Part shown: positions 3,601-17,502 of the stretch, one piece after another
Layout of the letters: the number at the start of each line of letters is the position of its first letter
Numbering within the stretch: position 1 is the first letter of the stretch
Assembly (NCBI GenBank): GCA_900088475.1
Contig: FLMG01004384.1
Coordinates: forward strand, 1 to 36,680
Source of the DNA: Hyphochytrium catenoides
Lineage: Eukaryota > Protista > Hyphochytriomycota
Length of the DNA: 36,680 bases
Direction of reading: 5' to 3'
Notes under the pieces: model-generated
What the model saw: the letters and a program-made list of their open reading frames with translations, nothing else
Told to the model about the DNA's origin: nothing
Database searches by the model: none
Program-made: the position numbers and the translations under genes

Positions 3601-6600
3601 CTACTCCGTTAGCCGCTTAGCAATGCTCCTTACCTGTGGATCATCAGAGAGAAACGAGTTCTGATACTTAAGACGTAGTTCTTTGGCGACATTCCACTCC
3701 ATCTCCAGCACCTCGGTGGATACATAGTCCCAGCCCTCAAACCATTTCTCCTCCTCTGGCAGCACAGACCGAGGTTCTTGCACTAATGGTTTGTTCCAAT
3801 CAACGTGTTCCAGTTCCTGCTCATCAAACTTCCGCAGCATCTCGTCAAGCCCCCGGAACTGCGGCGGATCGTCCTTTCCCGGCAAGGGCTCGACTGTGGG
3901 GATGAAAGGGGGCTTGGCCTTGTTGCCAATCAGCTCATCCCAATCTATACCTTTGAAGAAGTAATGGTTCCTAATGTCGTCTATGCTGCCCTCAATTGTG
4001 CAACCTAACCTCTTGCCGACGTCCTTCTCCAACAGCCTCGCAATGACGTCCGCAGCAGCTGGAGAAAGACCTTCGGGAATTGCCAAGGGGCCTTCAACTG
4101 CCATCTTTTCTGCCTTTTTGGAGTTCCGATACTTGGTGTTTTGGTAGGGCTTCTTACCCGTGAGTAGTTCACAGATCATCACCCCGAGCGACCAAAAGTC
4201 CACGGACACTCCGTAACCTTCAGCTTTACCCTTCTGGGTGAACATCTCTGGTGACCTGTAACCCGCAGTGCCAACATTAGAGAACCGACGGGACGACTTC
4301 CGTCTCTTTGTCTTGCTAGTAAAGCTAGGGGAGGCGGAGGTTAAGGTATGCTGTGTGTTTGTTGAGTTTCGCCGTGGGCCTCGATAGGCGGCAGCCTGAG
4401 GGCTTCCACCAGTATCTAAGGACTCTCTCCGAATAAGTTGAGGGGTCGATGGCTCCGCTCCCGCTTTCTTTGGGGGACTGTCCATGAAAAGCGATTCAGT
4501 CTGTTGATGGCCGCGTGCGAAAGACTCAAGAGGATATACTCTAGAGTTTTCTCTATTAGGAGAAGTGTTGCCGATTGGCGTTGAGACTTCCTGGGACCTG
4601 GTCGTGCGGACCGGGGACCCAACCGAGCCCTGATTGGCGGGACTATTGGGACGGGATGCTACTTGAGGCTGGGCGTTTGGACCTGCAGAAGGATCTGTTG
4701 CTACGCTCTTTATTTGCACCTCCAAGGTGAAGCCAGAGCCGCCAGTCTGCATTGGTCCAGATACAGCATCTTGGGCTCTTTCGTCTCTTCCAACGGTTCG
4801 ACCTAGCTGATTGAGCGTCCCGGACTTAGCGGACACTGTCTTTCCAACAGCTGCTGCCGACGCAACGGCCCCGCCGGAATCAGAAGCTCGTCGGCCAATA
4901 GCCTCTAATGATGGTCCTTGGCCGGGCTCAGCTTTAGGAAGGGCTTTGGTAGGTACCGTCTCTGCTCGCTCTATATCGGTTGCGGGCTGAGGGGGAGTAC
5001 TTGAACCTCCTGGATAGCCCTTTAGCTGCAAATTGAACTTCTCCCGACCCCCTTTTGGAGACGTTGAAGGTGTGGATTCTCCCTCAGGTACTGGACCATT
5101 CTCAATCAGTTGCTTGGCCTCCCCAATTACCGTGCCGTCATTCAACACCATTGGCTCATTAAGGGGGAAGACGTCAGACTTCCGTCTCAGCGGTGATAGG
5201 GAGTGTGAGTCGGCGAGAGAAGACTGCAGCGAGACAGTTTCCGTGCCATCGGTCTCATCATCTCCATCCGCCAGGGGAGCTGCCAAGCCCATATCCGCCA
5301 AGCAGACGTTCCCGTCTTCCCTTAGCAGGACATTCCGAGGTTTTAGATCTCTGTATAGCAGATTGAGGTCATGAAGGTGATGCAAAGCGAGCACCACCTG
5401 AGCGGCATAGAACTTGACACAAGCTTCCGACAGAGTCCCACCATTGGAGCGTCTATTCACTGCCAGATCTCCTCCTCTTACAAGTTCCAAGACTAAGAAA
5501 ACATACTTCTCGTTCTGAAAAGCATAATGTAGGTGTACTATGTAGGGATGGTGGGCTTTAACCAAGACGTTCCGCTCTGTTGCGAGCCGAGTGAGGTCGA
5601 ACTTGTACTCTTTCAGCAAAGATTCCTTGGACATCACCTTCATGGCGTAGAACATGCCTGTACTCTTTTTTCTCACCACGGCCACCCTTCCGAAGCCACC
5701 TTTTCCTAGAATCTTCATATAGTCGAAGTCATTGGGCTCTACCTTATTGTAGATATTTGCCCTGCCGAACTAATATCAGGAGATAAGAAGAAGGGTAGGA
5801 GAATTGCAATCTGGTGAGCCAAAAGGTTCTAGCGAGACTACTGACTAAGCTTGTTTGCAACTGGCCATCCGGACATACTATTTCATGCGCCCTATGTGTT
5901 CCGCGTTCACGCTCTCACTTTTTCTCTCTCTTCTTTCTTTTGTCTTCCTAGTACTCGTCAATGTCTTTTGTGATCTCACCTTGTATTTCCTATAGCTGTC
6001 CGACTGTACAAAGTTCCGGAAAATATTTTTCTCGATCCAAAAGAAGCACTGGGACTGAATCTCCTGGAAGAGCCCTGGTACCACTTCGTCTGCTGCATTC
6101 TGCTTCGTGATAGCTTCTTGGACAGCCTGCACATCCTTCCCCTTTATAAAATCTAAATAGTGAACACCCTTCAGGTCAAGAAATGTCGTGTACACACTTT
6201 TGGCTTGGTGTAGACGGAGAGTCCGGCTGGGAATCTCTACAAACTTCTGGATCTCAGCCTGTGATGGAGGATTATCAGTGGATTGACGGAGTGCCTTAGA
6301 TACCAAGTAACAGTAAGAGAGAATCAGGAAACCGACAGGGGATAGCAGAGTGGAGCAAAAAGAGCGATAAAAGGTGAAGAGACCGTCGACTGTCAGGCAG
6401 CGGTAAGGACTTGAAAGATTACTAGGTAAGCACAGACGATAGGTAGTGAAGTATCCACAGAGCAAAGGTAGCGACAACAAAGAAGCACGAGAGAACCTAC
6501 CCAGCAGGCTACTGGAGAATAAATAATCTCATGCTCCTTAGCATAGCGGGTCATAAAGACTATACCAATGGGCTCGTCTAGCACCCTTCGAAGCTCTAGG

Positions 6601-9520: not shown

Positions 9521-10015
9521 ATGGCACAACCTCTTCCTGCTGTAAGGACGAAAGCCGAGAAGAAGACGGAAGCATCAGTTGAAGAGCAAACTGCTGCAGA
9601 ACGCCCTCGAGTCTTCTATAACCTCGTACTGCATCCACGGCCAAGAGTCACTTGGGACCCAAATGTCATCAACAACGAGGGTATGGGAAAAAAGAGCTCA
9701 AAGAGTAAGTATTCTGGAGTCTCGCTTTTATTGAGCTGTGACAACTCACTGATAATGTTGCCTCAAGAATGTTGCATCTTCCATAAGACCCGCCCGTTTG
9801 ATGAAAGCTCTAGCGAGAGCAGTGAATCTTCCTCAGATGAGAGCGGGGAGGAGGAAGGTGCCAAGCCAAGTAAAAAAAAGAAGAAAGTAGTACGGAAGAA
9901 CGGTGAGCACAAACAATCCGGCACTTCTGGACATTCCTGCCGCCATGATCATCGTTCCCATGGCCCTAACAGTGATGAAGCAGCATGCATACCAGGTGAT
10001 CGAGCAAATGGATAG
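9521..10015 (+). CDS. PPP1R11: Protein phosphatase 1 inhibitor-3 (Ypi1/PPP1R11); intron 9705-9767
   Basis: RVxW PP1-docking motif in PRVTWDPNVINNEGMGKKSSK. After splicing this continues into KCCIFHK followed by an acidic Ser-rich tract, the hallmark of the family. Confidence 0.93.
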   Translation: MAQPLPAVRTKAEKKTEASVEEQTAAERPRVFYNLVLHPRPRVTWDPNVINNEGMGKKSSKSKYSGVSLLLSCDNSLIMLPQECCIFHKTRPFDESSSESSESSSDESGEEEGAKPSKKKKKVVRKNGEHKQSGTSGHSCRHDHRSHGPNSDEAACIPGDRANG

Positions 10016-10814
10016 TGATTGAATAGCAATATTATTTTATTAGTCCTATCGTTATGGGGATGGCACGGCCGCCAGTAAGGGACGTATTCCTGGCTTGGCT
10101 GATGCCCCTGACCGCTGACAAATGTTCTTTATTTATGTTGGGGCTCAGCTATGATAATAATAAGGGCGGCGGGGCCCCTACGATTTACTACTATTAGCTA
10201 TTCTCATTGGTGTCCATTCAAGCGAACTGTTCTTCACTCTATCGTCGTTGAGCTTCAGACAAGCAGCAATTCAGCGTGTAGGCGGGAGGGCACGACAATG
10301 GTTGGTTTGCATGCAGGATGATGGCTCAACAGACAGACACACTCTCATCATTCTTCTAATCAACATCATCCGTGCTGCTCCCGCACTGTAAGGGAAGCGC
10401 CACTATAGCCGTTAACCGCTGAGACTGTGGCTTGTCTCTTCTTCCAACAGGATGAGGAAAGCCCTGAGAAGAGGACAACAGGACAACAGACAGCCCGCCG
10501 TCCTCGTCCTTGCTCGTTGCTGGGCCTCGCATCAGTCAACCCAGAACCTACACTTCTTGCGGCTACCAGCTACCGTTCACCTGGTTCTTTCTTATAGCTC
10601 TCTTCATTGTACTCCTTAGCTATCTCGTCTGGGAGTACAGACGATAGGTGCAAGCTGTGAGAACGACGCCCTTGAGTCTCTCCGCTTCAGCAGTGAACTA
10701 GAGGTTCTCAGCATGACCACTTTCTTCTTCTCTGGGTATGAGCGGCCCTTGTCTGCTAGATTATGCCAGTAACATAACCTCGAGTTTGAGGACAAGAGGG
10801 TGGTTGAAGCGATT

Positions 10815-11983
10815 ATGGATATTGCCGGATCTGTCATAGCGGCTCCGGCCACTGAAGTACCTCCAATGCAGTCGGAGGAGCAGAAAGCTCGAATAGAGGC
10901 GAACCGATTGCGCGCACTAGAGAGATTGCGAGCAAAGGGTCATCAAAGAACGCCGGCGGAAGTGATATCAGCTACAAAGAGTGTTGAAATCAGGAAGAAA
11001 GATATTGGCAACGGCCATGACTCGCCGCGGACCCCCACCTTGGTATCGCCACCTTCTGAGGTTAAGAGCGGTGCCCAGGATGAGCTGGTGAGCCGTGGTG
11101 GCTTCATCAACGACGACATGGGTGGCGGTGGCTTTCTAGTGGATGACGGTGACGATGAGGAGGAGGTATCAGGTATTGGAGCTGAGGAGACGCGTGAGGG
11201 ATCTGACTCTTCCGGTGCAGCTCTTAGCAGGAGCGACTTGAAAGAAAAAGATGAACTTATCAGTGGCCAAGCGCCATTTTCCTCATCGTGCCAGCACTGT
11301 TCAACACTGACGGTCATCGGGGACCTCCTCTCAACTTTTAAAGAAGCTGTCTGCTATGAATGCCGACCAAAGTATAGCGAGTTTGATCTGCTGATCAAGA
11401 CAAAGGCTAAAGAAGAATATTTATTGAGCGATAAAGCTCTAGAAGGTATGTGGACAGCCGCCGCATCGGAAGCCAGTTCCCAGCTATTCACCGATCAGTC
11501 TTCTTGTCCCATTTTAGGAATTCCCTTCCTGGAGAAGGTGAATCCCAACAAAACAAACTGGACTCCGATGAAGCTCTATCTTCGAAAGCTGGTGGGTATC
11601 TGCCGTCCTCTGTAGTTCTATGTCTGGGGGAGGATGCTGATGAAGTAACAGGTTGAACGCATGGCCCTAGCGAAGTACGGAAGTCTAGAAGAGCTTGAAA
11701 AGGAGAAGGAAAAGCGGAAGCAGGAGAAATGGAAGCGTTCGTCTAAGAAGAATAAAGATCTATTAAAGCAGACCTCAGGTACAGGATACTGCTTGACCTC
11801 CTGAGCCCACTCTATGCTGCTAATGCTATGACTATAGGCTCTTCTGTCGTCAAAAAGCGTTCGGTACGCTTAGCTTTTGAGGACGACCATACCCACACCT
11901 ATATAGAAGAGTTCGCACAAGCCTCTCAGACGTGGTATAACGTCTGTGAATGTGGGATGCGAGTGCCATTTGAAAAATTCTGA
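10815..11983 (+). CDS. XPA: DNA repair protein XPA (Rad14 family), 4 exons
   Basis: N-terminal helix EEQKARIEANRLRALERL, GGGF ERCC1-binding motif, C4 zinc finger CQHC...CYEC, LLIKTKAKEEYLL, NPNKTNWTPMKLYL, ALAKYGSLEELEKEKEKR, and C-terminal HTHTY...CECGMRVPFEKF*. Confidence 0.92.
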
Positions 11984-12038: not shown

Positions 12039-13679
12039 TTAGGCCAGCAGATGGATGTGTTCTTCCCCTAACGATGAAGCTTCTTCCGCTACCCGCGCGT
12101 CTCCTTCTTCCTGGAGCCGTTTCTGAGCAGCCTGTGCTTGTGCAGTCCAATTGAACTTGTAAACAAATCGAGTGAAGACCGCAAAGTTGCAGGCAATTGC
12201 CAAGGTCAGACCACCCCACAAGCCGAGGACTCCTAAGCCACAAGGAAATCCTAAGAATAAGCCTAGAGGAATGCCTAGGAGATAATACATAACGAGATTG
12301 TACTTGGCTGCTGTGCTCTGCTCTCCGCAGCCCTTCACTATCCCCTGTAATGTCGCTACACATCCATCGAAGATGTGGGCTGCAATACTGATGAACATCA
12401 TCGGGATGACATACTTGAGAACCTCTGGGTCCTTAGAAAAGCCATTACTGATCTGCTCCCTGAAAATTAGAAGAAGCCCGACGTCAAGTGTGGTCACGAG
12501 TAGGCACAGGCCCATTCCCAGATAACACGAGTTGCGGGCAAGAAGAGGATGGTTTGCCCCCAGAAGGTTGCCACATCGGATGGTCACCGCTTCAGCCAGG
12601 CCCATGGGTATCATATAGAGCGTAGAAAGGATGCTGAGAACAATATTGTAGGCAGCTAGCTCCGAGGTACCCAAAATCCCAGCGAATATGCAGAGAACCT
12701 CGAACGCCCACCATTCAAGACATATTTGAAGGCAGGAGGAGGTTGCCAGTGAACAAAGCTGGCTCCATCTCTGTAAGGCCGCCCTGTGAAAGCCGAAGAA
12801 TAGCCGTTCCTCTCCCTGTGGATCAAAGGGGCCACAATTAGCATAAAAAGGATTAAAACATACAAAAACATCAACTAAGGTACGCACCTCTGGCCTCGGC
12901 CACGTCTTCTTATGGATGCCAAAATACAGGATCCAGCCCACAGTGAAAGCAAAGGAGACCCAACGCTGGACTGCAACGGCCAGCGCCGCACCGATGAACC
13001 CGACCTCAGCAACCTCAATAAGCAGATAGCAAGTGGAGGTGTTGACCACCATACATGCCAAGCTCGAATACATCGTGAAGTCGACGATGCCTTGGATCTG
13101 CAGATACTTTAGCAGAACGATGTTCCACGTTAGAGGTAGATAGCCAAGGCTCAGCCAGCGCACGTAGGAGCCTGCATACTGAGCAATATCGGGGTGCTGC
13201 CCCAGAAGCAACAGGATGTCTTCCGCAAAGATTGACAGGAGTAAACAAGGTATTAAGAGAACTGAAAGGAAGAGAAGTCCCCTCTGCACGTAAATTCCGA
13301 CGAGGTGATACTGTTTGGCGCCATTAGCTTGGCTGAGGAGAGTGTCAAGCGCTGTTGACATACCAACAAGCACAGACACGGCAGTGATGTTGCTGTACAT
13401 TATTGCTAAGGAAGCTGCTGCAACATATTCCGTCCCCAGAGGACCAATGAAGAGTAGATTCAGCAGCTGAGGAACACTGCTAATGAGGTTCGACACTACT
13501 AATGGTAGGGCTAACCTCATGAGTAGAGGTATCTCGAAGGCTATGATACCATATATAGAGGCTTGCTGTGCAACAGGGACAGGCATTTCTTCCGGGTGTA
13601 GACCGTCCTCCATGCTCAGCTTGCTCGACGTTGACGCTGTCCGTACTTTATCTTGAGGGAGAGGCTGCACTGCAGACAT
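12039..13679 (-). CDS. MATE family (SLC47/DTX-like) efflux transporter, copy 1; probable intron 12816-12887
   Basis: ALDTLLSQANGAKQY, CLEWWAFE, RCGNLLGAN, QGIVKGCGEQ, YYLLGIPLG and GLWGGL motifs, with about 12 hydrophobic segments. First ATG is at 13679 (the ORF track start at 13715 is GTG). Confidence 0.93.
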   Translation of the reverse strand: MSAVQPLPQDKVRTASTSSKLSMEDGLHPEEMPVPVAQQASIYGIIAFEIPLLMRLALPLVVSNLISSVPQLLNLLFIGPLGTEYVAAASLAIMYSNITAVSVLVGMSTALDTLLSQANGAKQYHLVGIYVQRGLLFLSVLLIPCLLLSIFAEDILLLLGQHPDIAQYAGSYVRWLSLGYLPLTWNIVLLKYLQIQGIVDFTMYSSLACMVVNTSTCYLLIEVAEVGFIGAALAVAVQRWVSFAFTVGWILYFGIHKKTWPRPEVRTLVDVFVCFNPFYANCGPFDPQGEERLFFGFHRAALQRWSQLCSLATSSCLQICLEWWAFEVLCIFAGILGTSELAAYNIVLSILSTLYMIPMGLAEAVTIRCGNLLGANHPLLARNSCYLGMGLCLLVTTLDVGLLLIFREQISNGFSKDPEVLKYVIPMMFISIAAHIFDGCVATLQGIVKGCGEQSTAAKYNLVMYYLLGIPLGLFLGFPCGLGVLGLWGGLTLAIACNFAVFTRFVYKFNWTAQAQAAQKRLQEEGDARVAEEASSLGEEHIHLLA

Positions 13680-13984
13680 TTTTGGGAGGCCTTCAGTCTG
13701 CCACTGGTGGGACACTTGGTTAAAATAGAAGTGTGGGTCTGCTAATTAGCTGATTCAACCTTGAACCTCGGAAAGCTGCGCAGCGGATAAGGTGGAAGTA
13801 GAGAACTCGATGAGGAGTACGAGCACTAATGACTGCTGTTGGATGGGTTGAAGGCGAAGCGCGAGACGTGAGTGGTAGTCCTTAGTAAGAGTCACTGGAC
13901 GTCGGGCAACAGTGATGGACTGCTGAGCTGATGAACAACGAATGATGAGTTGTGGAGGCCAAGAAATGGAGGATAGGGCACGGG

Positions 13985-14857: not shown

Positions 14858-16455
14858 TCAACGTCTATAGAGAAGCGCTGTCATCTCGTCTGGACTTACT
14901 GGACCGTCAGCCCGACTCGTTGTTGGTGATAACGAATCCTCTTCAATAAGTCTCTTTCGAACTAGCCCTACCTCAGCCTTCCAATCCATCTTCCAAACAA
15001 AGCGGAAGAAGACCACCGCATTGCAAATGATGCCCAACGTCAGCCCCCACCATAGTCCCTTAACTCCCATGCCACAAGAGAAAGCTAAAAGTATAGCTGC
15101 TGGGATACCTAACAGGTAGTACACCCCGAGGTTGATCTTAGCAGCCACTCCCTGCTCCCCACAACCCTTCATAATGCCCTGGAGCGTCGCAACACAGGCA
15201 TCTGCACAATGTGTAACAACATTTACCAAGATCAGTTGTACAACGTAGTCCTCCACCTCTGCGTCATTGGAGAAGGCCCTGCTGATCGGGTGCCTGAACA
15301 GAACCAGACATCCGACATCTACAATGCCCATAAAGAGGGCCAGCCCCAGGCCTATGAAGCAGGTGTTCTGCGCCAGTGACGGCAAATCCGCCCCCAGAAG
15401 GTTGCCACAGCGAATAGTCACAGCTTCAGATAGACCCAGAGGAATCATGTATAATGTCGAGATGATACTTTGCACGATGTTGAATGCAGCTAGCTCTACC
15501 GTGCCAAGCATACCGGCAAAAATACAGAGAACCTCGGATGCCCACCACTCCAGGCACACTTGCATGCAGGATGACAACGCCAACCTAGCCATTTGTGACC
15601 AACGTCGGAGAGATTCTCGATGAAAGCCAAAACATAGTCTATCCTCACCCTAGTTCCAACCGAGAGGAGTTAGCTGCGTCTTAGTAGGGTTTCCATAGCG
15701 GAGTACTGGCTTCGTTTCAGGGCATCTATGATTTCACTTACCCGCGGATTTGGCCAGGCCTTCTTATGCAGTGCGAAGGAATATATCCAGGCCCATGTAA
15801 AGAGAAAGGAGAACCAGCGCTGGATGGTAACAGCCAGGGCAGCTCCAATGTAGTTGAAGCGTAGTACTACTATGAGAAGGTAGCAGGCAGTAGAGTTAAC
15901 TGCCAACCCTATAATGGTGGAGTACAGAGTGAAGTTCACGATGCCCTGGACCTGGAGGAACTTGAGCAACACGATGTCCCAGATGAGTGGTAGGTAACCC
16001 AGCGATAGCCACCTAACATAACGACCCGCTAAATGCGCAACCTCTGCATCTTGCTTCAGTATGACCAGGACATCTTCAGTGAAGTACGATATAAGACAGC
16101 ACGGAGCAGAAAGAGTTGAGAAGAAAAGTAATCCCCGCTGGAGGTAGATGCCCAGAAGGTCATAGCGCTTGGCCCCGTTAGCCTGGCTGAAGAGAGTATC
16201 CAGCGCTGTCGAGGCGCCGATAATGATTGAGAGGCTGGTAATGTTTGTGAACATTATGGCCAACGACCCTGCTGCCACCACTCTGGTTCCAAACTCCGAA
16301 AGGAAATACAGGTTGACCAGCTGTGGGAGATAGCTGATGAGATCAGCTGCAATCAATGGGAGGGCAAGATGGAGCAGAAGAGGCAGCTCCAAGCTGAAGG
16401 CTTCCATGAGGCCCTCCCCCTCCCTCCGAGGTAAGAATTGTAAGCAACCTTCCAT
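14858..16455 (-). CDS. MATE family efflux transporter, copy 2; intron 15650-15741; true start may lie in an upstream exon (to ~16700)
   Basis: ALDTLFSQANGAKRY, CLEWWASE, RCGNLLGAD and QGIMKGCGEQ motifs. ORFs 15670..16458 and 14858..15592 are joined by a GTAAGT...TAG intron (WPNPR|GEDRLCFGFH). Confidence 0.92.
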
Positions 16456-17502
16456 CACATTGCTCCCCTACACACGGCAAAGGCAAATCATCAGTGAGAC
16501 GTATCAGCTGGCACGGGCCATCATTGCTACGCGGTGCTAAGCCCTAGGAATGCTAAGCCTGAAGAAGTACAGCTTTCTACAGTTACAGCTACTTCCTCGT
16601 CCCCCCAGCACACTGACGTCAAAGGTGATGATGAGCTCTTACAAGCTAGGAATTCAAGGAGAAGAGAGAAGAGTGCGCCTGCGCGACGACGATGCTCATC
16701 GCGCCGAACTTGGACAAGAAACAAGAGGGTCCTGCTAGTAGGTGGGATTCCTTACAATCACTTGACAACTAGTTAATTATAAGTGTCAACCTTGCCACAG
16801 CTTTTCATCACCAGACTATGATACAGGGTGTGAATTAACACTATTCACACCTCACTAGAGACAGTGGGTGTGAAAAAGAAGGATCGATGGCAGGTTTGTC
16901 CAGGGTGAAAGGTCATTGTTAGATCCTTCAGAAGCAGGCTTTGTATGTAAGCTGAAGACGGCAAGGCCCAGCAAAAGGGCTGAAGAAGATGACGATGGCC
17001 GCCGCACTGCAATAGCGCTGAGAGCTGCGTCTTCCTCGTAAAGTGTTCATCGAGGAAACACTGTAAATCACATGTTGGATGATTCCATTCTAGGGTAAAC
17101 GGGATCTCAGTTCCTCCAAACGGCAAGGGTGCGGGAAGGAGCACAGCACGACTATGTCCACCTTTGTTCTGATGCTATTTGGACTGTTATGTCGCGAGCT
17201 CTGATGAGGTCGGGACCTCCGGCTCTGTAAATCGACGGCGGAGGTCACGTTTTCAAGCAGTCTAATAATTCGAAAAATTTTCTTAAGCTTACTTGTTGCC
17301 AATCCAATGTACCTGACTAGTTATAATCAATGGTACTGATGTTGTCTTCTTCGGGGCAACAATACTTGGCTGCGGCTCCGCGGTGTTAAAAGCAGCACAG
17401 GATATCAAAATAGCTTGTGCTCTGGCACCATGTGACATGTTGTTTCCGCGGTTAACGCCACAACCTCACCCACAAGATCCGCAGCACGAGTATGACCGGG
17501 AC

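Follow-up and report, generated by a model that had tools for sequence, protein, structure and literature searches.

The window analysed here, a stretch of 36,680 nucleotides (nt) comprising contig FLMG01004384.1 of Hyphochytrium catenoides (assembly GCA_900088475.1), encodes a GRK-like RGS kinase whose activation segment is opened up by an insert carrying six RRxS motifs. The insert is exactly 335 amino acids long and lies between DMGLA (residues 142-146 of a 705-amino-acid open reading frame, ORF, on the minus strand, window positions 3601-5718) and VGTAGYRSPE (which begins at residue 482); the whole DFG-to-APE span amounts to 19-23 residues in most of the other eukaryotic kinases returned by the searches. 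A first-pass annotation, made from the DNA letters, had proposed an insert of about 335 residues with six RRxS motifs at this place, and on both counts it proved accurate. We favour, with moderate confidence, a reading in which the insert acts as a phospho-regulated, disordered activation-segment linker or switch in an N-terminally acylated AGC kinase with an RH domain.

The gene is predicted to consist of three exons encoding a 909-amino-acid product (Table 1), with exon borders set by homology; the exons join in frame and the spliced translation contains no internal stop. Its N terminus, MGCSSS, is predicted to be a dual-acylation motif of the myristoylation/palmitoylation type. Relatives begin with MGC, MGA or MGS, and have in common with the window gene an ELR..L.DP.GQ motif and the CW motif that ends exon 1. 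In family member P0001 the counterpart of the intron 1 junction is FFCWVEIYEYQNIPS, and the spacing at the intron 2 junction equals that of YKQEIKSTYNRVTVDDFEY in the same protein. Pfam recognised RGS and Pkinase domains alone on this gene. The RGS match (PF00615) in exon 2 scored 34.2 bits against a cut-off of 23.9 and was recovered too in a scan of the gene's own genome for RGS domains, while the Pkinase match is broken into two stretches flanking the insert, the split HMMER hit that the annotation had suggested looking for. Among PDB sequence matches, the N-lobe was closest to RSK N-terminal kinases (132 bits; GRK1, 107) and the C-lobe to aPKC, MSK1 and GRK2/3 (about 71-81 bits). The catalytic motifs are intact, comprising GKGGFGRV, the AMK lysine, YRDLKPRN with its asparagine, DMG and SPE. 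With GxGxxG and these residues all in place, a pseudokinase reading was rejected. DMG stands in place of DFG in every family member examined.

The insert is rich in small and polar residues (S44 P33 G33 A30 T29 R24), and hydrophobic residues make up 17% of it versus 35% of the kinase lobes. Structure prediction with AlphaFold2 (AF2), run on the exon-3 ORF with a family alignment, gave no secondary structure for residues 144-478, where the mean predicted local distance difference test (pLDDT) score of 10-residue blocks was 29-43. Both lobes fold, with blocks reaching about 95: the N-lobe part scored mostly 59-94 per block, falling to 45-48 over residues 1-10 and 41-60, and the C-lobe scored 62-95. 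The insert is thus predicted to be fully disordered. A HMMER search that used the insert as its sole query and covered all 1.84 billion representative proteins returned 0 matches at E<=0.001. Within the 61-Mb assembly the insert DNA is single-copy, and it contains no tandem or direct DNA repeats and no protein self-similarity. A mobile-element or repeat origin was rejected on these grounds.

The occurrence of RRxS in the insert is non-random. Across 20,000 shuffled versions of the insert RRxS averaged 0.22 occurrences, and none (0/20,000) reached the six observed. Each of its six RR dipeptides is followed by xS (6/6), compared with 13% of those in 17,270 amino acids of other ORFs from the same genome, and the motif density is 17.9 per 1000 amino acids versus 0.81 in those ORFs. 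Because the six motifs are encoded by differing Arg codon pairs and the insert lacks self-similarity, they did not arise by recent copying from each other. Two of the six sites match the hydrophobic(-5)-x-R pattern that CaMK-type kinases recognise. RRxS suits PKA, PKG, other AGC kinases and CaMK-type kinases alike, and any of these could be the writer. Proline-directed [ST]P sites were also counted (12 observed versus 7.2 expected, P=0.03); this excess is weak and no claim is built on it.

The best relatives of the window kinase are stramenopile proteins that combine an RGS domain with a kinase, from Aphanomyces, Pythium (one of the relatives is named 'putative GPCR kinase') and the brown alga Ascophyllum, and further members were found in Triparma, thraustochytrids and metagenomes. 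Maximum likelihood trees were built with the inserts removed; they included one animal-type GRK (P0021), and MASTL/Rim15 were not among the sequences. The window kinase falls inside a 12-member stramenopile GRK-like clade (support 98/90), and when Triparma and a metagenomic fragment were added the clade retained support of 94/88, with the window kinase on its own deep branch. The clade takes in RGS-kinases of oomycetes, a brown alga, bolidophytes and thraustochytrids; the best identity of the window kinase to its members is 45% over 366 columns. P0021, the sole animal-type GRK in the tree, lies outside the clade on a branch of length 2.07, and phototropin P0022 also falls outside it. The window kinase carries the full family signature: an N-terminal MG, DMG, the T-loop RRx[ST]xVGT (RRFSNVGT) and the C-terminal FxxWDY[IV]S (FEGWDYVS). 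A full-length model of family member P0008 (predicted template modelling score 0.72) matched GRK1/2/4/5 structures in 50 of the 50 listed matches, over 535-590 columns and with a best E of 1e-27; by homology the spliced window protein would be expected to fold alike.

Since it groups in this clade, the kinase belongs to a family that has already been described; the GRK-like architecture read in the first-pass annotation, an RGS domain joined to an AGC kinase, is supported, but it does not make the kinase one of a new sort. Members from Phytophthora, Albugo and Ectocarpus were called 'GRK-like' by Mushegian et al. 2012 (PMC3307776), who reported a single gene in each unicellular species and in whose tree the oomycete and alga proteins make up a separate clade close to GRK2/3. 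The P. infestans kinome contains one GRK, PITG_16476, of the same stramenopile GRK-like family (Judelson & Ah-Fong 2010, PMC3019232). No mention of an activation-segment insert was found in either of these two papers, and no functional study of the non-animal GRK-like family was found in the literature searched. Sequence kinship with MASTL, one of the clades that the annotation had named for comparison, was not supported beyond the AGC fold: no MASTL chain was among the best 60 PDB matches of either lobe, and membership of MASTL/Rim15 was rejected on sequence.

The insert is not confined to this gene, and here the reading in the annotation needs correction. Every clade member examined has an insert at the same spot, and the lengths from DMGxx to GT are 32, 32, 34, 55, 61, 66, 73, 99, 102, 127, 214, ~255 and 336 amino acids, the last being the window kinase, with those of the other members thus running from 32 to ~255. 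Large inserts are spread over three separate subclades; thraustochytrid-type P0014 (~214 amino acids) is close to Hondaea P0013 (127 amino acids). Judged by sequence, the window insert is the extreme of a length continuum, not a unique invention. One metagenomic member (P0123/P0133/P0135), cut at its N terminus, has at least 170 Ser-rich amino acids before the T-loop VRKRRTKSFVGT; its tail is long, rich in Ser and Lys, and contains GKMLS repeats. This member represents one more large-insert lineage.

The sixth RRxS motif differs in kind from the other five. When the T-loop strings of the family are lined up, RRFS-NVGT of the window corresponds to RRKT-TVGT in oomycetes, RRKS-VVGT in Triparma, KRRS-IMGT in the brown alga and RRTKS-FVGT in the metagenome. 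The family therefore retains, in basic surroundings, a T-loop residue that can be phosphorylated, unlike animal GRKs. In the HMMER alignment the Ser of motif 6 occupies the T-loop position of MSK1, the phosphosite of that kinase, and GRK3 has Ala there. Motif 6 is thus predicted to be the family-conserved activation-loop phosphosite position. Of the six regulatory sites originally claimed, five stand as lineage-specific RRxS motifs and the sixth is, by this alignment, the T-loop site of the family. The C-terminal F-x-x-W-D-Y-[IV]-S motif resembles the phosphomimetic hydrophobic/PIF motif of aPKC/PRK kinases (FEGFEYINP in PKC iota). Action of PDK1 on the T-loop through a PIF-like FEGWDY motif is conceivable.

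The activation segment of the family has two parts, a variable unstructured linker after DMG and then the conserved RRx[S/T]-x-VGT-x-GY-x-x-PE. In the window gene the linker has expanded to 335 orphan residues, predicted to be disordered and very probably translated within exon 3, in which five extra RRxS motifs have arisen independently and appear to be maintained. Together the six RRxS motifs form a cluster of candidate sites for a basophilic kinase, be it PKA, PKG, another member of the AGC group or one of the CaMK type. The anatomy, coding character, disorder, motif enrichment and family membership come from the sequence analysis; the phosphorylation events and their effects are inferred as follows, with the insert most likely serving as a phospho-regulated tether or switch. 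Phosphorylation of the T-loop Ser480 (ORF numbering) would activate the kinase, and phosphorylation of the other sites, with the polybasic patch KTKRRKSSRR, could shift the loop over the catalytic cleft or modulate access to it. Alternatively, the phosphorylated loop could serve as a docking place for a protein that binds phosphosites, for instance 14-3-3, on the model of yeast Rim15. In either form, input from a second-messenger kinase would be coupled to a kinase placed at sites of G-protein signalling by its RH domain and acyl anchor. The gating by multisite phosphorylation that the annotation proposed is a reasonable hypothesis for which Rim15 offers a precedent; a basophilic kinase is a plausible regulator, and PKA is one candidate among several. 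The related oomycete P. infestans has 7 PKA and 6 PKG genes (PMC3019232).

Several observations weigh against this reading. Position +1, where PKA sites typically have a hydrophobic residue, is hydrophobic only at RRESL, and it is Asp at two sites. Other large-insert relatives have few or no extra RRxS motifs (one in Triparma, none in thraustochytrids). In word-index searches with the ORF and with the C-lobe plus tail, against a collection that did not include the window's own protein, no orthologue of the window paralogue was found, the best identities being 55% for the N-lobe and 39% for the C-lobe. The exonic status of the insert is argued from sequence statistics and from relatives. Finally, disordered inserts of the Greatwall type are largely dispensable for catalysis, and for this reason the window insert could be mostly a passive spacer, that is, a neutrally grown low-complexity linker in which the extra RRxS motifs, the T-loop RRFS apart, have no regulatory role. 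The spread of family insert lengths from 32 to 336 amino acids with no conservation of sequence, the want of a homologue anywhere searched and the thraustochytrid inserts of 127 and 214 amino acids that contain no RRxS are all consistent with such neutral growth. In contrast, an enrichment that no shuffle matched, in which every RR runs into xS, with differing codons and no repeats, would be hard to reach by drift, and the frame stays open across 1 kb. We consider the passive spacer unlikely. Were the motifs non-functional, the gene would be an ordinary case of disordered-loop expansion.

A different account would direct the sites at the kinase itself, with the RRxS motifs serving for autophosphorylation in cis or as pseudosubstrates, and the loop being autoinhibitory like the basic insert of NDR. 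A family-wide T-loop site in RRx[ST] context is what autophosphorylation would lead one to expect, KTKRRKSSRR stands directly ahead of the T-loop as the basic patch does in NDR kinases, and an acidic residue is retained at the position of PKA Glu127 (GGD). The residue after DLKP, however, points the other way. In PKA this residue, Glu170, binds the P-2 Arg of the substrate, and it is Glu in each AGC outgroup inspected. The window kinase has Arg at this position, and its relatives have A, C, G, Q or R, with Glu kept in three thraustochytrid-type members; its replacement by Arg here, and by A, C, G or Q in most relatives, should disfavour RRxS substrates. Because the Glu170 equivalent is Arg, an RRxS preference of the kinase itself is less likely and another basophilic writer is indicated. 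Metazoan GRKs, moreover, are not known to be basophilic in this manner. Self-directed phosphorylation is thus given a smaller chance than the passive spacer.

The entire 4276-5280 stretch is very probably exonic. The insert frame has 0 stops in 1005 nt, compared with 13 and 21 in the two remaining forward frames and 9-16 when the opposite strand is read. Within it no GTRRG…YAG pair was found that spans 43-420 nt in a multiple of three, as an in-frame intron would need. Its guanine-cytosine (GC) content is 47-63% versus 44-46% in the two introns of the gene, and codon preference supports frame 0 across the insert except in three weak sliding windows (around residues 301, 376 and 421). The most telling pointer to translation is that transcript-derived relatives retain large inserts at the same site, of ~214 amino acids in P0014 (MMETSP) and ~255 in P0122/P0124 (Triparma pacifica). 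That unrecognised in-frame introns make the mature insert much shorter is accordingly highly improbable, for although introns in this genome are short (~60-240 nt), codon preference weakens in those three places and GC falls to its minimum of 47% at residues 372-400, the uninterrupted frame, the lack of a suitable splice-site pair, the transcript-derived relatives and the spread of RRxS from residue 178 to 480 all oppose it.

A stronger form of the favoured reading makes the loop a signal-integration module, in which a cyclic-nucleotide-dependent kinase would write the five loop sites and the T-loop, so that G-protein and cyclic AMP/cyclic GMP inputs converge on one kinase. We regard this form as doubtful. 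If it held, the design would have evolved independently, convergent with the control of Rim15 and Greatwall by PKA, and the ancestral GRK-type kinase would have been regulated through its T-loop, a control that animals later lost.

Comparison with known systems places these features in context. Stramenopile GRK-like proteins share with the window kinase the N-terminal Gly acylation motif, the RH/RGS domain, the AGC kinase with DMG and a variable post-DMG insert. Compared to oomycete-type members, the window kinase has a far longer insert (336 versus 32-102 amino acids) and five extra RRxS motifs, and it lacks the terminal PYK..QLTGE tail. Another parallel in anatomy is the Triparma pacifica RGS-kinase (P0122/P0124, MMETSP0785), which has the same architecture, an insert that starts DMGLAAPL and a Ser/Pro/Gly-rich composition over ~255 amino acids, with an internal SRRKSN and a T-loop ERRKSVVGT, hence one extra RRxS only. 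Triparma nevertheless groups with the brown-alga copy, and the two insert sequences are unrelated save for a short RGP.R.NS resemblance, in which RGPRRNSTN around motif 4 loosely resembles RGPYRKNSSTRN of the Triparma insert. Metazoan GRK1-7 likewise combine an RH domain with an AGC kinase, and GRK2/3 have the T-loop string SVGT.GYMAPE in common with it; the activation loop of animal GRKs, however, is short and without a phosphosite (Ala in GRK3), these kinases being activated by docking to receptors and not through their T-loop, and Glu follows DLKP, whereas the window kinase has the 335-residue insert and Ser.

Rim15 and Greatwall-MASTL also belong to the AGC group, and like the window kinase they have subdomains VII and VIII separated by a very large disordered insert. 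In Rim15 this insert is 188 amino acids long and carries a 14-3-3 site, and PKA inhibits the kinase via five RRXS sites (PMC1479807). By analogy Rim15 would be the best functional counterpart of the window kinase. In Pfam terms the window kinase differs from Rim15 in having no PAS, zinc-finger or REC domain and an RH domain instead. In NDR/LATS and plant AGCVIII kinases too the activation segment carries an insert, which follows DFG/DFD and precedes the T-loop, and a basic patch stands immediately ahead of the T-loop; these inserts are of 30-100 amino acids with conserved functional motifs, and the kinases have no RH domain. Nor are they near the window kinase in the tree, where phototropin P0022 falls outside the clade.

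The family and its architecture were already known, as were large activation-segment inserts and clusters of PKA sites in other AGC kinases. What the sequence comparisons appear to add is the recognition of the non-animal GRK-like clade as insert-bearing with a basic T-loop site retained, together with a divergent second paralogue that has the largest family insert so far and a statistically robust RRxS cluster. The non-animal GRK-like branch thus keeps a phosphorylatable basic T-loop along with a disordered insert otherwise tied to Greatwall, Rim15, NDR and AGCVIII kinases. The window gene offers a handy test case for the mode of activation of early GRK-type kinases, and for second-messenger kinase input to the G-protein signalling of stramenopiles, among which are major pathogens of plants and animals.

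The genome contains a second GRK-like gene (locus L006, G000:C2738:54102-57485), an oomycete-type copy with a 102-amino-acid insert. It begins MGSGVS…, has an RGS domain, an AGC kinase and the T-loop RAKSTVGT, and ends in the oomycete-type tail …PYKICQLTGE. Its two introns are short and phase-1 (GTAAGA…TTTTAG and GTAAGG…ATTAG). On sequence, the window gene is the divergent second paralogue of its genome, giving two genes where one GRK-like gene per unicellular species had been reported (PMC3307776). L006 has three RRxS motifs (RRQS, RRSS and RRES), all in its N-terminal disordered leader, and the GRK-like proteins of this genome may repeatedly gather RRxS motifs in their disordered regions.

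Table 1. Features of the window, in the order of the kinase gene followed by its neighbours; exon borders are those placed by homology and the disorder of the insert is predicted.
Feature	Window position	Strand	Details
Exon 1, 94 codons	6501..6782	(-)	Start codon, MGCSSS, disordered leader, initial RH/RGS helices (…LELRRVLDEPIG…PVACW)
Intron 1, 242 nt	6259..6500	(-)	GTAGGT…CACAG, GC 46%; joining restores family motif ..CW/AEIQKF.EIPS (slash marks the junction)
Exon 2, 93 codons	5980..6258	(-)	Bulk of RGS/RH domain; Pfam PF00615
Intron 2, 210 nt	5770..5979	(-)	GTGAGA…ATTAG, GC 44%; junction yields RKYK/FGRANIYNKVEPNDFDY
Exon 3, first part	5281..5769	(-)	Kinase N-lobe and catalytic loop to DMGLA; Pfam Pkinase stretch 1
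Activation-segment insert	4276..5280	(-)	ORF residues 147-481; orphan, disordered, Ser/Pro/Gly/Ala/Thr-rich
RRKS motif 1, LRRKSD	5176..5187	(-)	ORF 178-181
RRAS motif 2, GRRASD	4882..4893	(-)	ORF 276-279
RRES motif 3, IRRESL	4420..4431	(-)	ORF 430-433
RRNS motif 4, PRRNST	4363..4374	(-)	ORF 449-452
RRKS motif 5, KRRKSS	4294..4305	(-)	ORF 472-475; inside polybasic patch KTKRRKSSRR
RRFS motif 6, SRRFSN	4279..4290	(-)	ORF 477-480; Ser four residues ahead of GT in VGTAGY
Exon 3, last part	3601..4275	(-)	C-lobe (VGTAGYRSPE…), AGC tail with FEGWDYVS, terminal helices, stop; Pkinase stretch 2
PP1 inhibitor, Ypi1 type (PF07491)	9521-10015	(+)	Pfam match
XPA C-terminus (PF05181)	10800-11615	(+)	Pfam match
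MATE transporter (PF01554)	12039-13715, 14858-16458	(-)	Pfam match; two adjacent genes or one split

The neighbouring ORFs of the window have no evident functional tie to the kinase. Across the 61-Mb genome the RGS domain (PF00615) gives at least 65 separate matches above the Pfam cut-off, a large repertoire for a protist, and most of these matches are not adjacent to kinase matches. Opposite the start of the insert, on the plus strand (window 5033-5374), runs an antisense ORF of 113 amino acids, which probably results from the high GC content of the coding strand.

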